Shown here in pieces: positions 5,872 to 11,258 of a stretch of DNA of 64,000 bases. The position numbers were made by a program, and so were the translations under genes. The DNA lies in the sequence record LT598654.1. One strand, 5' to 3'. How positions within the stretch are numbered: the stretch's first letter is position 1; each line of letters opens with the position of its first letter. The notes under the pieces are model-generated. The model was not told where the DNA came from and did no database searches. It saw nothing but the letters and a program-made list of their open reading frames with translations.

Positions 5872-6424
5872 TCAATCGGACAAGAAGTTAATTGCGGATA
5901 TTAAAACGGAACTAACTCGAATAATCATTGAAGAAAAAGCAACGATAAACGAAGGTATGTTGGTAAAGCAAGCCCTTATGAAGGCACTTGACCAAGCACA
6001 GTACAACCAGAAGACTATCCGCACCAGACCTATGGAATGGACTGACTTGCCTTTGACGCGAAGAACTCGTATCCGAAATTGGCTTGCGTACAAGATATTT
6101 AAGCGTGAGAAGATACGTAGATTTCGTTGGTATCATCTGTTGTTTGGGTATAAAGTTCGTGCTAATGCCACTGCTAAAATCTCAATCAGTGATTTGCGCA
6201 TTAAGATTGATGTACCCGTTGCAGATAGTGATTACCAGGATTCAAGGTACAGTGAAGCACTCGCTGTCTTGAATAAGAAAATGCAGGATAGTATAGAACA
6301 GTCTGTGTTTGCAGCTATTGAAACTCCATACAATAAAGTGTGGACAGACATTGAATTGAAAAGACAGGCAGAAGTACAAACTTTGCAATTCGATTTTAAA
6401 GTAGAGGGAAAGGATGAAAGTTGA
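5858..6424 (+). CDS. Hypothetical protein
   Basis: Probable start at MALPNQ (5858) with GAGG upstream; the ORF track starts at 5822. Confidence 0.7.
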   Translation: MALPNQSDKKLIADIKTELTRIIIEEKATINEGMLVKQALMKALDQAQYNQKTIRTRPMEWTDLPLTRRTRIRNWLAYKIFKREKIRRFRWYHLLFGYKVRANATAKISISDLRIKIDVPVADSDYQDSRYSEALAVLNKKMQDSIEQSVFAAIETPYNKVWTDIELKRQAEVQTLQFDFKVEGKDES

Positions 6425-7025
6425 ATTAGTTGTAGCAAGTAACCAAGAAGGAGTAATCGGTAACTACTCTGGCGGTAAGCATACTATCCCGTGGAATGTT
6501 CCTAGTGATTTGGCTCAGTTCAAAGAGTTCACGTTGAGCAAAACCTTAATCATGGGATTCAATACTTGGCAAAGTATCGGTTGTCGTATGTTGCCTAAAC
6601 GAGACCATATCATTGTGACTTCACGCTGGTGTAGCATCAATCCTTTTGACTTTGATGAAGTGATGGCTTCTGCTCTAGGTAAAGGCATCAACGCAAAGTG
6701 GGAAACCAACAAAGAGAAAGTGAAACAAGGTAGCCTTGTATTCCTTCCAATTCACATGTTGGTTGAATACATGCGAAAGCACGACCACGATTATGTATGT
6801 TCTGGTGGTGCTCAGCTTTACAAATGGTTCTTAGACAACAACTTGGTTGACTTGGTTAGGTACACAACTATTTGTACTGGAGACACAGAGTATTCCAATC
6901 CTATTAAGTTAGATACCTCACTGTTCTCCAAGTATGAACTTGTCGGTAACCGTGAGAACTATCTTGGTGTACCCGGTAAAGACCAACATGCTTTCTTTGT
7001 AGAATATTTAAAGCCTAAAAAATAA
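6414..7025 (+). CDS. folA: Dihydrofolate reductase
   Basis: VVA...GVIG...IPWNVPSDLAQFKEFT..KTLIMGFNTWQSIG.RMLPKRDHIIVT and GGAQLY. Confidence 0.92.
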   Translation: MKVELVVASNQEGVIGNYSGGKHTIPWNVPSDLAQFKEFTLSKTLIMGFNTWQSIGCRMLPKRDHIIVTSRWCSINPFDFDEVMASALGKGINAKWETNKEKVKQGSLVFLPIHMLVEYMRKHDHDYVCSGGAQLYKWFLDNNLVDLVRYTTICTGDTEYSNPIKLDTSLFSKYELVGNRENYLGVPGKDQHAFFVEYLKPKK

Positions 7026-7142
7026 TTCAGAATTTCGATCCTTACTAATTTAAAATTGAGTTACTACTTGCTCAGTTACTCGGTTCCCGTGGCTTTTGTT
7101 TTACAATAGCCCCCGATTAGAAGTGTCTCGGGTATAATAAGA

Positions 7143-7430
7143 TACTATTCAGAACTACCTTAGTTCGCTAGCAAGACGGAGTGTATAAATTGACAGTCCG
7201 GTCAACACAAGGGCTTGCTAAACAGTAAGGTAGAAGTAAGGATCGAACAGTAGCAGTCTACATGGATGTGATTGTTTTGTTTTGGGTTGGTAATGGTTAA
7301 TTGCTGTTGAACAACGTGTCCGTTCTCAGTAAGAGGTTTTTCACAATTTCCTCTATTTAGTCTGCGTAAGCGATGGCCCAAACAAATTTACTCTTAGCGA
7401 TACGGTAACTACTGTTTTGACTTACATTCC
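7143..7430 (+). ncRNA. Candidate structured non-coding RNA
   Basis: ORF-free gap. Nested stems 7155-62/7226-33 (8 bp perfect), 7169-75/7214-20 (7 bp perfect) and 7190-94/7201-05; long-range pairs 7246-53/7409-16 (8 bp perfect) and 7277-88/7375-85. TATAAT lies just upstream. G-U pairs favour the + strand. Confidence 0.45.
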
Positions 7431-7528
7431 TTTCACCATGTCATGTCAAAATTCCTCAAGAAATTCGCAAATAAAATAATACTAATTTTTACATACGCTT
7501 CTTCACTTTCTCACGAGTACAAAGTTTT

Positions 7529-7813
7529 ATGTGGACTGATTCTAATTCACGACCCGGAATGGTTTGCTTTTCAAATCCTTCCAAAGATAACCCCATTGAT
7601 TTAAGCAGAGTGAAACCTGGAATCACTAAGCTTGCAGTAAAACCTTTTAAAGGATGTTGCGGTAGTCTTCTTGGCTTTTCCGAGTATACGATACTTGACG
7701 TAGGCGAATACAAAGACAAATCATGCACCATACCTCTTTTCAGAGTCGAAGGTAATCTTTTCTTCTCACCGGCTCAGATTTCGTATCTCATTACTCCTGA
7801 CGATTCCGAATAG
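7529..7813 (+). CDS. Hypothetical protein
   Basis: 94-aa ORF followed by a terminator; weak RBS. Confidence 0.45.
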   Translation: MWTDSNSRPGMVCFSNPSKDNPIDLSRVKPGITKLAVKPFKGCCGSLLGFSEYTILDVGEYKDKSCTIPLFRVEGNLFFSPAQISYLITPDDSE

Positions 7814-7826
7814 AATCTAACAAATC

Positions 7827-7852
7827 AACCTGACATTAGTTCAGGTTTTTTT
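7827..7852 (+). terminator. Rho-independent terminator ending the + strand block
   Basis: AACCTGA/TCAGGTT stem followed by a T-run. Confidence 0.7.
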
Positions 7853-8022
7853 GTGGCAAAATACTGAGAAAAACAGCTTTTATAGCTATCATACGTGACT
7901 AGAAAATTGAGTATAAAAGGAAGCAGGAATGCGTATGTAGGATATAGAGGAGGTAGGATTCTACGTATCTAAAATCGCTTGATTTCAACGTAGTAGGCTG
8001 ACAATTATTGAAGAATTTAACC

Positions 8023-8054
8023 AAAAAAGAAGGAGAACACGAATGCTCTCCTTC
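8023..8054 (-). terminator. Rho-independent terminator ending the - strand block
   Basis: GAAGGAGA/TCTCCTTC stem with A6 on + (U-run on -); a second hairpin lies at ~8056-8092. Confidence 0.7.
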
Positions 8055-8101
8055 AAAGGTGTCGTCGTAGAGGCTAATAAACGACGACCTTGCAGGACCA
8101 C

Positions 8102-10573
8102 CTACAACAATGTTTTAGAACCATCTAAGCTGTGCAGTTGCTTAACCGATTTAGGTTCACCGAACTTACGGTCACGAACCATTCGGATTTGAATAGTACC
8201 TTTCGGAACATCGATACCAATTACTTCCGCAGGTAAGAACACTGAACCTGATTTAATCGCGTACAGTGGAGCACCGAACGTAAGTGCTTTGGCATTGATA
8301 GACTCGTTAGATAGCTTAGCAAGTTCTTTTTCTTTCCGCGTTTTATCCGCAGGAGAAATTCCCTTACTTCGAATCTCTTCCACCAATCTCGCAATCTGTC
8401 CTTTGTTGCGCTCTCTGGTATCCAAGTTACGTTTAACTTCTAACAACTTCAAGCTACGTTCCTGCTGTTCTTTTGGAACAGTCTTCAAGGTCATAAAAAT
8501 AACAACACTGATCTTAGGAACTTCACCAGGCTTCTGACCAAGAACATCAACGCGACCTTTGATAGCCTTACCATAGATTCGTTGAATGCGAACAACAAAA
8601 TCTTTGGCTTCATTGATAAACTTCTTGTTTACCGTATCAGTGTTGAACACCAGATAGTAGAAACCTTTTGGCGATTTACGAACACGGTTACCCTTTAACT
8701 TTTTGGTATCGTGCGCAAAGATAGCTGTGAACTTCTTGTCGCGAATGATAGCTTCTTGGAGTTCTTCCATTGCAGCTTTTTCATTCCCAGGAAACACAGG
8801 TTCGTTAGGCTTCCAGTCGGTGTCATCGTAACGAGGTACTTCGATTGATTCATCGTAAACTACCAGCTTAGCAGGCTTGTAGTCTTTCTCCAACATGCGT
8901 CCCATAGTAGAGAACTTGTTGAATATAGCGCCTTTGATGTACGTAATCTTTTTACCATTAAGACGTTGAACAATATCGATAACGTCTTCGGTGTAGTAAC
9001 GAATAATCTTAGCAGTACTACCGATGTTCTTTTGGTTTTCCATGAAGCTGTTGAGGTTCTTTTTAACCTCTGCAACTGTCTCACCTTCAACTACAGCAAC
9101 CCGCTCCGGCTGATGTGCGCTAGGAACAAAGAAACCGAGTAAAGTAACAGAACGCTTTTTATTATTAGTGCGTACTGTCTTCTTTTGTATTTCTTTTTCA
9201 ATTTGTTCTTCGCCCTTCTTAACAGGTCGTCCAGGTGTAACGACTTGATTACTGGGCTTATCGATTTGTTTAATATCACCATTACCTCGCGTCAGCTTAA
9301 TTCCATCGCGCTTACCACCAAAACCTTTACACTGCTTAATAAGATTTTGTGCTTCGCGTTCACTAAGCTTCCATTCCTGACCAGGTAATTCGTCAGCAAG
9401 CGCAAGGTATACTGACTTAGCACGAGGGCTATAGCGAATACCAATAACAAGACCTGGTTCAACTTCTAAATCATAACTGCGGTTGTGCTTTTTAAAGTGT
9501 TTGCTTCGAGCACCATTGAATTTGTACCAAGCGTAGTTAAGCAAACTGAAATCTTTCTTAGCACTTTCACTTAACAGACTGGTTTGGTCTGCACTGATTT
9601 GCGAGGTACTTACAGATTCAGCAAAATCAATTGCTGCCTGTTTAGCCTGTTCGTCACCAGATACAATGAATGCACCATTGCCTTTAGGAATTGTTTCATA
9701 TCGGTCAACAGGAACAACTTTACCTTCACCTGGAGAAGGGAACTTGATAAAGACTTTGAACGTGTCTTCTGTTTCATCAACAGGTTTAACTTCAACGTCT
9801 TTGTATTCCATAATGTCAGAGTACCAGTCTTTGGTTTTCTGACAAGCATCTTCCATTGTGTTTGGTTTGAAGCCACAGCTTTCACGTTTTACTTCTGTGC
9901 CTTCACCGAAGCCGTTGATTGCTCTGTGCGACCAGCCGTACCACTTACCATCGAAACGACTTTTACCGATACTACATACCTTGTTATTGCCGCTAGCCAA
10001 CTCAGGCATAATTCCTTTTTCTTCACACAGGAACTTAGCAGTTTCGGCATCACCGATGTAGTCACCGTTAATGTTATACGCAGATACCAACTGAGTAGGG
10101 TTTTCTTTAGGGCTTCCCCAACCTAAAACACAATCCTCTTTTGCCAAATAGTAGCCGTATGCAGCAAGAGGAGAGGTATCTGTTTCGACAGTACGCTTGA
10201 ACATACCGCCTTTGTTTACGTAACCTTGTTCTTCAAGAGACTTAACGAAGCTATCAAATTCGTCTTCACTTGGATCACCGGTTGGGACATTAACAGGTGC
10301 TTCGGGTTTGCAGTTTTCATCTGTCTCGTCATCCCACTCAGACCAAAGACGGCTAGGTTCCCATACTTTAGGCTTGTGCGGAATACTTGTCTGCTGACCA
10401 ATAGGTTCTACGTCAAGTTTTTTAAACGTTTGGTCATTACGCTCAATAGATGATATTTGACTAACCGAACGGAAAGCACTGAGAGATTGGAAATCAAGTA
10501 GGTACAAGAATTGACCTGTACCTGACTCAGAACACAACCGACTATGTTTAGCCACTTGTAAAATAGGGAGCAT
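8102..10573 (-). CDS. Large multidomain basic protein, probable internal head protein
   Basis: Probable start MLPILQ (10573, AAGGA RBS). Contains a YAWYKF.G...L..CK.F.GK domain shared with ORFs 44941 and 57660, and several S-x-S-A/G motifs between domains. Confidence 0.7.
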   Translation of the reverse strand: MLPILQVAKHSRLCSESGTGQFLYLLDFQSLSAFRSVSQISSIERNDQTFKKLDVEPIGQQTSIPHKPKVWEPSRLWSEWDDETDENCKPEAPVNVPTGDPSEDEFDSFVKSLEEQGYVNKGGMFKRTVETDTSPLAAYGYYLAKEDCVLGWGSPKENPTQLVSAYNINGDYIGDAETAKFLCEEKGIMPELASGNNKVCSIGKSRFDGKWYGWSHRAINGFGEGTEVKRESCGFKPNTMEDACQKTKDWYSDIMEYKDVEVKPVDETEDTFKVFIKFPSPGEGKVVPVDRYETIPKGNGAFIVSGDEQAKQAAIDFAESVSTSQISADQTSLLSESAKKDFSLLNYAWYKFNGARSKHFKKHNRSYDLEVEPGLVIGIRYSPRAKSVYLALADELPGQEWKLSEREAQNLIKQCKGFGGKRDGIKLTRGNGDIKQIDKPSNQVVTPGRPVKKGEEQIEKEIQKKTVRTNNKKRSVTLLGFFVPSAHQPERVAVVEGETVAEVKKNLNSFMENQKNIGSTAKIIRYYTEDVIDIVQRLNGKKITYIKGAIFNKFSTMGRMLEKDYKPAKLVVYDESIEVPRYDDTDWKPNEPVFPGNEKAAMEELQEAIIRDKKFTAIFAHDTKKLKGNRVRKSPKGFYYLVFNTDTVNKKFINEAKDFVVRIQRIYGKAIKGRVDVLGQKPGEVPKISVVIFMTLKTVPKEQQERSLKLLEVKRNLDTRERNKGQIARLVEEIRSKGISPADKTRKEKELAKLSNESINAKALTFGAPLYAIKSGSVFLPAEVIGIDVPKGTIQIRMVRDRKFGEPKSVKQLHSLDGSKTLL

Positions 10574-10583
10574 AATTCGTCCT

Positions 10584-11258
10584 TTATTCTGTAGGAGTTG
10601 GAGGATTACCTTCATAAGCGGGCCAGTTAGCCCACGTTAAAGATTCTAATTCGGCAACAGTAGTACACGCAGATATTCGTGCCTTAGTTGCTCGACGTTC
10701 GCCTTCTAATTGACCAAAGAAAGTAGCAAGTGATACCTGGCTATCTGTCCAGTTGGCTATAATGGCTAACGCTAAATAATAGTAAGGGTCGCCTGTTACA
10801 TCGGCTTCACTTTTTAAAATATTGGGACACGGTACTTGTTCGTGTGTTGGTAAATCAGTTGTTGAATTCAAAGCCTGCCATTCTTCGACAGCAGTTTTAT
10901 ACTCCACCGCCGCAGCAAACTTTAATTCATAAACAGTTTTCTGAGTCAGAGGTGTAGTCTGACTTATTGTATGTAGAGCAAGCGCCTTCCTTTGAATGAT
11001 GTTGCATTCTTCCATGAGTGTAATTATCCAGGCATCGATTGTCGCAGCGACTCTGAATTCTTCAAGCTTACTGCTAGCCCATCTTGTACTATCGGAAGGA
11101 TTCTCCCATTGAAGACAATTGAACTCTGTTTGTGTTGGTAGTTTTACACACCGAACACGAATAGATGGATCTTGAATAGCAATAACCTCGACAAGAGACA
11201 GCACCCTTCTGTTTAAAGGGCTATCCCTTAGCTCGGCTGCAACGTCGTATGTGCTCAT
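10584..11258 (-). CDS. Tail-fibre assembly chaperone-like protein
   Basis: Probable start MSTYDV (11258; ATGA overlap). C-terminal YELK..AA...EADVTG...LA.AI...E.ERRATKARISACTT..EL resembles phage fibre-assembly proteins. Confidence 0.55.
   Translation of the reverse strand: MSTYDVAAELRDSPLNRRVLSLVEVIAIQDPSIRVRCVKLPTQTEFNCLQWENPSDSTRWASSKLEEFRVAATIDAWIITLMEECNIIQRKALALHTISQTTPLTQKTVYELKFAAAVEYKTAVEEWQALNSTTDLPTHEQVPCPNILKSEADVTGDPYYYLALAIIANWTDSQVSLATFFGQLEGERRATKARISACTTVAELESLTWANWPAYEGNPPTPTE

Follow-up and report, generated by a model that had tools for sequence, protein, structure and literature searches.

A conserved RNA of about 370 nucleotides with an intricate fold in a clade of marine jumbo phages

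The DNA analysed here (the window, 64,000 nucleotides) belongs to the phage NCTB, which has a circular genome of 257,877 bp and was sourced from surface water (LT598654.1); positions in the window equal positions in the record minus 124,000. A preliminary description, made from the sequence alone, had singled out an ORF-free gap as the only large one in the window, and this is borne out: positions 7026–7488 form the longest stretch free of ORFs of at least 60 aa, and the sole other ORF-free stretch of at least 200 nt is the convergent-terminator region at 7814–8101. No frame within the gap is open for more than 61 codons. The 5' neighbour of the gap is a DHFR gene (6414–7025, plus strand; Pfam DHFR_1, E = 5e-22) and the 3' neighbour is an ORF of 94 aa (7529–7813, plus strand) that is unannotated in GenBank, shares 70% identity with a counterpart in a related phage (L002:7082–7372) and belongs to a family found in all related lineages. 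At 7489–7626 on the minus strand GenBank lists a 45-aa CDS (BN7874_170), which is probably spurious. The 94-aa ORF has an invariant GCCG motif and homologues in at least nine lineages. The DHFR of NCTB and of L002 carries an insertion of about 40 aa after residue 71 relative to other members of the clade and to the Pfam profile, and the Pfam alignment of the NCTB protein covers residues 3–71 only.

Downstream, a bidirectional terminator-like hairpin (7827–7847) lies between converging plus- and minus-strand gene blocks, with a second terminator for the minus-strand block at 8029–8054. The convergent gene beyond it (8102–10615, minus strand) encodes an 837-aa protein with Tad6 (anti-Thoeris) and KMPT-N domains. 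In relatives (L010, L013), genes for Acb1, SspB, MmcB-like, HDOD and MCP-signal proteins lie near the locus. Combined with the Tad6/KMPT-N protein, these genes place the gap at the edge of a likely counter-defense and host-takeover region, and the neighbourhood also holds genes of nucleotide metabolism (DHFR, thymidylate synthase and thymidylate kinase).

Homologous elements are present at the same genomic place in nine sequences, representing approximately seven distinct lineages of uncultured marine jumbo phages. The syntenic loci were found by word searches (DHFR, the 94-aa ORF and the 837-aa protein) and contig look-ups, and lie on contigs of 180–278 kb: L002/L006, L007/L008, L009, L010 (also L011, L012, L029 and L111), L013, L014 (with L015 and L016) and, added later, L030 and L112. 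Identity to the NCTB proteins is 37–49% for the Tad6-like protein and 28–52% for DHFR, from which it follows that silent sites are saturated. Every related lineage has an ORF-free stretch of 290–600 nt at this place. The flanks of the stretch vary by lineage: the upstream neighbour is DHFR (6 of 8 lineages) or a 140-aa ORF, and the downstream neighbour is a member of the 90-aa family or an inserted ORF of 82, 228 or 250/312 aa, four unrelated families in all. The 312-aa ORF call in L030 (8462–9400, minus strand) covers about 140 nt of the RNA described below; its real start is probably the ATG at L030:9261, which is preceded by GAGGGA, and alignment of the protein to its L010 homologue begins only at residue 59.

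A covariance model covering the 166-nt core, with a seed of five sequences, recovered two lineages absent from that seed (L013 and L030; the two E values are 4e-6 and 9e-6) and found one copy in the whole NCTB genome. L008 was not found by the model at E ≤ 1, nor was any copy found outside the NCTB-like clade in the other IMG/VR and metagenome loci searched, a set that includes 78 IMG/VR loci with Tad6-domain genes. Searches of a cultured-phage collection with the gap, the 94-aa ORF and the 837-aa protein (blastn/tblastn) matched only NCTB itself, and searches of IMG/VR with single proteins and with a DNA pattern gave no match. The IMG/VR loci returned by a DHFR profile belong to other phages and have no such gap, and the gap is likewise absent from more distant phages that share the DHFR or Tad6 neighbourhood.

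Read on the plus strand, positions 7054–7425 specify an RNA of some 370 nt that is conserved and has an intricate fold (Table 1). All of the stems proposed in the preliminary description are present and most occur in the minimum-energy fold. The outer stem of its first hairpin (P3 in Table 1) and the closing stem of its second domain (7246–53/7409–16) are kept in relatives by compensatory changes, and the stem that it placed at 7277–88/7375–85, here 7276–86/7377–86, has positional counterparts in L002, L010 and L008. The boundaries required revision at the 5' side, where a start at 7143 had been given; the conserved element begins approximately 90 nt further upstream, near 7054, and takes in a pseudoknot that had been missed.

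Table 1. Parts of the folded RNA and its flanking motifs, in window coordinates
Feature	Position	Strand	Details
Conserved motif TACTAATTTA	7043..7052	+	Just upstream of P1
P1, 5' terminal hairpin	7054..7077	+	At the same position in 8 of 8 lineages folded, with unrelated sequences
P2, variable hairpin	7091..7111	+	Single-sequence folds only; length differs by lineage
H-type pseudoknot	7112..7150	+	S1 7112-15/7129-32; S2 7122-28/7140-46
Pseudoknot extension, 2 pairs	7120-21/7149-50	+	Past a 2-nt bulge; read by eye from alignments
Linker AGAA	7151..7154	+	Between pseudoknot and P3; (C)AGAAC kept in 5 of 7 lineages
P3, long hairpin	7155..7233	+	Outer stem 7155-62/7226-33
Closing helix, 5' strand	7236..7253	+	H' GTAAG 7236-40; GAUCG 7241-45; H AACAGTAG 7246-53
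P5 hairpin	7254..7274	+	Conserved loop ACAUGGAUGU 7260-69; GGA 7264-66
P6 domain	7276..7386	+	Stem 7276-86/7377-86; sub-hairpins include AGAGG 7332-36/CCTCT 7350-54
P7, small hairpin	7388..7408	+	7388-91/7405-08; precedes 3' strand of H; weakest helix
Closing helix, 3' strand	7409..7425	+	H CTACTGTT 7409-16; UUGA 7417-20; H' CTTAC 7421-25
Second motif copy TACTAATTTT	7480..7489	+	40 nt before the next ORF

The 5' part of the RNA is organized around the pseudoknot and P3. In a plain MAFFT alignment, 97–100% of the cells of S1 and S2 are paired, with double-sided changes at 3 of 4 pairs of S1 and 4 of 7 pairs of S2; a separate tabulation took in seven lineages. The loop of this pseudoknot contains the TATAAT (7133–39) that had been proposed as a promoter; that reading was rejected because the hexamer is loop 3 of the pseudoknot, and it is not kept as TATAAT in relatives. 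The outer stem of P3 is fully paired in seven lineages by seven different sequences, and two A residues separate P3 from H'. The pseudoknot region of L008 folds differently, and the closing helix and P5 are retained in that lineage.

The 3' part is held together by a closing helix of 13 bp, interrupted by an almost invariant internal loop, GAUCG/UUAA, the 3' side of which is UUGA in NCTB and UUAA in six other sequences. The palindrome GAUC (7241–7244) is part of the loop's 5' side. L008, the sole lineage whose loop differs, has GGCC there, likewise a palindrome, and the AAUC of L013 is not one; the palindrome could be a hint of RNA–RNA dimerization or could be due to chance. Helix H encloses a four-way junction with P5, P6 and P7. 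The P5 loop keeps ACA-N-GGA in 5 of 7 lineages and a GGA in all seven, on stems that differ in sequence. P6 has counterparts by position in L002, L010 and L008 and is a single short hairpin in L030, while P7 was seen by eye and in single-sequence folds of NCTB, L002, L010, L009 and L014. The shortest form of the RNA, that of L030, measures 290 nt and retains everything except most of P6 and P7. A crossing pair between 7264–71 and 7422–30, from which a pseudoknot had been suggested, is displaced by H': the CTTAC at 7421–25 instead pairs with the GTAAG at 7236–40, covarying in 9 of 9 sequences, and bases 7264–71 sit in the P5 hairpin.

Comparison of the syntenic gaps of related phages, as the preliminary description had advised, revealed compensatory changes far in excess of chance. 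For the pseudoknot, P3 and P5 together, in a plain MAFFT alignment that had not been fitted to the structure, 94.4% of cells are paired versus 80.4 ± 2.8 in shuffles (n = 500), and double changes occur at 10 of the 19 pairs tested versus 4.8 ± 1.4, a value reached by none of the 500 shuffles; slid controls gave 30–41% paired. For the closing helix (H' and H, nine sequences), 96.2% of cells are paired versus 75.9 ± 2.4 in shuffles, double changes occur at 10 of 13 pairs (again 0 of 500 shuffles) and slid controls gave 25–51%. A rigid template for this helix, anchored on GATCG and consisting of 5 bp, a 5/4-nt loop and 8 bp, is matched at 13 of 13 pairs in NCTB, L002, L009, L030 and L112 and at 12 of 13 in L010; random anchors score 13 in at most 1% of trials. 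For all four helices, strands pair far better with partners from their own lineage than with partners from another. In the alignments, invariant short blocks alternate with helices that differ in sequence and retain complementarity.

The same material identifies the strand and the level at which conservation acts. S2, H, H' and P5 all contain G–U pairs, which on the opposite strand would become A–C mismatches; the RNA is thus read from the plus strand. Searches with tblastx returned equally weak matches in all frames and on both strands, which points to conservation at the nucleotide level and not at the protein level. It should be noted that folding energy, put forward in the preliminary description as a means of refutation, is no better than in dinucleotide shuffles: z is −0.67 (plus strand) and −0.19 (minus strand) for the span first described and −0.49 for the full NCTB core; among relatives, full cores range from −0.4 to −4.2. 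The NCTB stems are therefore not beyond chance by folding energy and are far beyond chance by covariation, and a folding-energy test alone, under which the finding would fail, would wrongly have discarded a real RNA.

The motif upstream of P1 is conserved, with TAATTT kept in all lineages 1–9 nt (mostly 4–5) before P1. The form ACTAATTTW occurs five times in the 258-kb genome, no more often than a control pattern, and four of these copies lie between genes in the sense orientation, two of them flanking the RNA. The 3' copy also occurs in L002 and, in a variant form, in L009, and is absent in L014, L008, L010 and L030. Another copy (LT598654.1 61034–61042; locus L109) lies between gyrase A and the next gene, within a 24-nt loop that is closed by a perfect 10-bp stem with arms GAGTAGCGTA and TACGCTACTC. 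The motif has no recognizable −35/−10 (sigma-70) geometry. It may be a phage-specific promoter or an RNase E-type site of cleavage or processing, the latter judged against the RNase E consensus. A perfect 13-nt inverted repeat, 7034–7046 (TTCGATCCTTACT) with 7235–7247 (AGTAAGGATCGAA), connects the sequence immediately before the motif with the RNA's most conserved block. L002 retains only part of this repeat and the remaining lineages have lost it, and because it is not kept in relatives it was not used as a structural feature.

With respect to the 3' end, no terminator-like hairpin with a U-run directly follows 7425, the nearest being that at 7827–47, and in most lineages no terminator is visible between the element and the upstream gene. 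The sole RNA-library run found to include the stretch consists of contigs in which genes and gap have uniform depth; it probably represents the sample of origin and is uninformative as to transcription.

The element was also compared with the known classes. A scan with Rfam 15 (4227 models) gave no match at the gathering threshold in the window or in the loci of six relatives, and at E ≤ 10 NCTB and three relatives produced only weak, unrelated matches that shared no family. No tRNA or tmRNA gene was detected by ARAGORN in the 64-kb window, in line with the lack of tRNA, tmRNA and other matches initially noted. The RNA is thus a new family, absent from Rfam 15 and, within the searches made, restricted to NCTB-like marine jumbo phages. 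The initial suggestion of an uncharacterized structured phage RNA is supported by the compensatory changes, the plus-strand G–U pairs, the lack of a frame-specific coding signal and the lack of a fitting Rfam family. A known riboswitch class was rejected, as no Rfam riboswitch matched (THF and ZTP included) and the downstream ORFs fall into unrelated families. Mimicry of rRNA was also rejected; in a blastn-short comparison with the E. coli rrnH operon, matches were limited to 9–12 nt (E 0.1–8), the matched rRNA sites differ by lineage and look-alikes of 16S 700–720 fall at covarying positions. Short motifs may resemble the glmS ribozyme, and the internal loop may resemble the UAA/GAN motif.

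The flanking genes vary on both sides, which indicates an independent module and favours a stable RNA that acts in trans by binding protein. In this preferred reading, to which we assign a probability of about 0.5, the RNA is made on the plus strand and serves in trans as a scaffold or decoy that binds protein. It would start at TACTAATTTA or be cut there from the transcript of the DHFR operon, would accumulate as a stable species, and would offer two recognition surfaces, the invariant internal loop and the hairpin loop with GGA. A host regulator of the CsrA/RsmA type is a candidate partner for P5, as judged from the resemblance of its loop to the CsrA binding site. The 94-aa protein encoded next to the RNA was considered as a binding partner and found to be unsupported: the protein has distant homologues that are not accompanied by the RNA, and its AF2 model, a small beta-rich fold, is of only medium confidence (pLDDT 68) and has no significant PDB match (best E = 0.12). 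Against a stand-alone RNA are the lack of a clear terminator after the element and a motif that is rare in the genome and lacks −35/−10 geometry.

In L014, L008 and L030 the next ORF starts 16–25 nt past the last helix, an arrangement that resembles a 5' leader and makes a cis-acting element a serious rival. Such an element, either the 5' UTR of the downstream gene(s) or an intercistronic part of the DHFR operon, would control expression or stability through binding of a metabolite or protein or through blocking of RNase, and we regard it as possible, with odds well short of even. The co-directional operon, in which most lineages have no visible terminator on either side of the element, would suit this role, as would the neighbouring genes of nucleotide metabolism and a compact junction whose conserved unpaired AGAA and GAUCG/UUAA resemble a ligand pocket. 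However, the downstream gene is not constant, and in NCTB, L002, L009, L013 and L010 a poorly conserved spacer of 45–130 nt, carrying the second motif copy in three of the five, separates the element from the next ORF. Further, no expression platform was found that alternates with the conserved helices, and none of the Rfam riboswitches matches.

Beyond the trans-acting reading in its general form, the RNA may, tentatively, represent a new class of large complex-folded phage RNA that is devoted to catalysis or to the assembly of a specific RNP acting on the host. Should this be the case, its functional centre would consist of the almost invariant GAUCG/UUAA internal loop together with the ACA-N-GGA loop, and the class would be comparable in standing to GOLLD, ROOL and OLE when these were first found.

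A ribozyme in the strict sense, which would cleave or process itself, for example by freeing itself or by splitting the operon transcript at the flanking ACUAAUUU motifs, is improbable. The size and complexity of the RNA (pseudoknot, four-way junction and invariant internal loop) are typical of catalytic RNAs and the same 9-mer lies on both sides of the element in NCTB and L002, but four lineages lack the 3' copy (L014, L008, L010 and L030), no known ribozyme family matches, and the pseudoknot is a plain H-type one rather than being nested as in HDV-like or group I cores.

More doubtful still is a sponge of the CsrB/RsmZ type that titrates CsrA/RsmA. The SELEX consensus of CsrA, RUACARGGAUGU, has invariant ACA and GGA with the GGA in a hairpin loop (PMC4347634), and the P5 loop ACAUGGAUGU (ACA-N-GGA-N-G-U) fits it in a hairpin loop of the NCTB RNA. 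A second GGA is present about 25 nt upstream in four lineages. This second GGA is in the paired H' strand, however, and is absent in L009 and L014, and GGA is not enriched in any lineage, with 3–9 motifs per RNA against 4.7–6.4 expected (within 2 sd throughout), on which ground a multi-site sponge of the CsrB type was rejected.

It is very improbable that the stretch is a DNA-level element, such as a replication origin or protein-binding array, or a decayed gene with chance stems; the folding energies, the GATC (Dam) site in the most conserved block and the Dam-type methylase encoded by the phage could be read in that way, but four separate helices are kept by compensatory double changes, the G–U pairs function on just one of the strands, iterons and tandem repeats are absent, the genes converge here and do not diverge, and conservation is not frame-specific. 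The origin-type element allowed for at the outset is unsupported for the same reason, as strand-specific G–U pairing and helix covariation are signatures of RNA.

Large structured RNAs that covary strongly and form a new class are seldom found, and past examples have turned out to be ribozymes, riboswitches and the cores of RNPs. The RNA described here is carried by phages and lies among genes of nucleotide metabolism and anti-defense (a Tad6-domain gene here and Acb1 in relatives). Its distribution is narrow and the phages are uncultured, and its shortest form, that of L030, is small enough for probing, cryo-EM and pull-downs.

Several known systems share individual features with the NCTB RNA. 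As in the group I introns of T4 (td, nrdB), a structured RNA of similar size with a pseudoknot is found among genes of dTMP synthesis; unlike these introns, the NCTB RNA interrupts no gene and its pseudoknot does not have the P3–P7 topology. A group I intron was rejected because both neighbouring genes are complete, with DHFR aligning to its relatives through its own stop and the 94-aa ORF being separate with its own start, and there was no match to the P3–P8 core of Intron_gpI even at E ≤ 10. The leader of T4 gene 32 has a pseudoknot that serves as a translational operator between phage genes. In the NCTB RNA, too, an H-type pseudoknot lies in untranslated sequence between phage genes, but as one module of a 370-nt multi-domain fold, with a downstream gene that varies and no gp32-type gene adjacent.

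The known CsrA sponges carry many GGA motifs. The P5 loop shows ACA-N-GGA as in a high-affinity CsrA site, a feature shared with CsrB and RsmX/Y/Z, whereas the NCTB RNA has one conserved site, perhaps two, and most of its conserved structure has no counterpart in the Csr/Rsm RNAs. The NCTB RNA matches none of the Rfam models of GOLLD, ROOL, HEARO, OLE and raiA, is not beside tRNA arrays and belongs to a single clade of uncultured marine jumbo phages. It nonetheless resembles these RNAs in its length of hundreds of nucleotides and its multiple covarying helices with pseudoknots, and, as with them, it is an orphan RNA linked to phages or mobile elements that was found by comparison in an intergenic gap.
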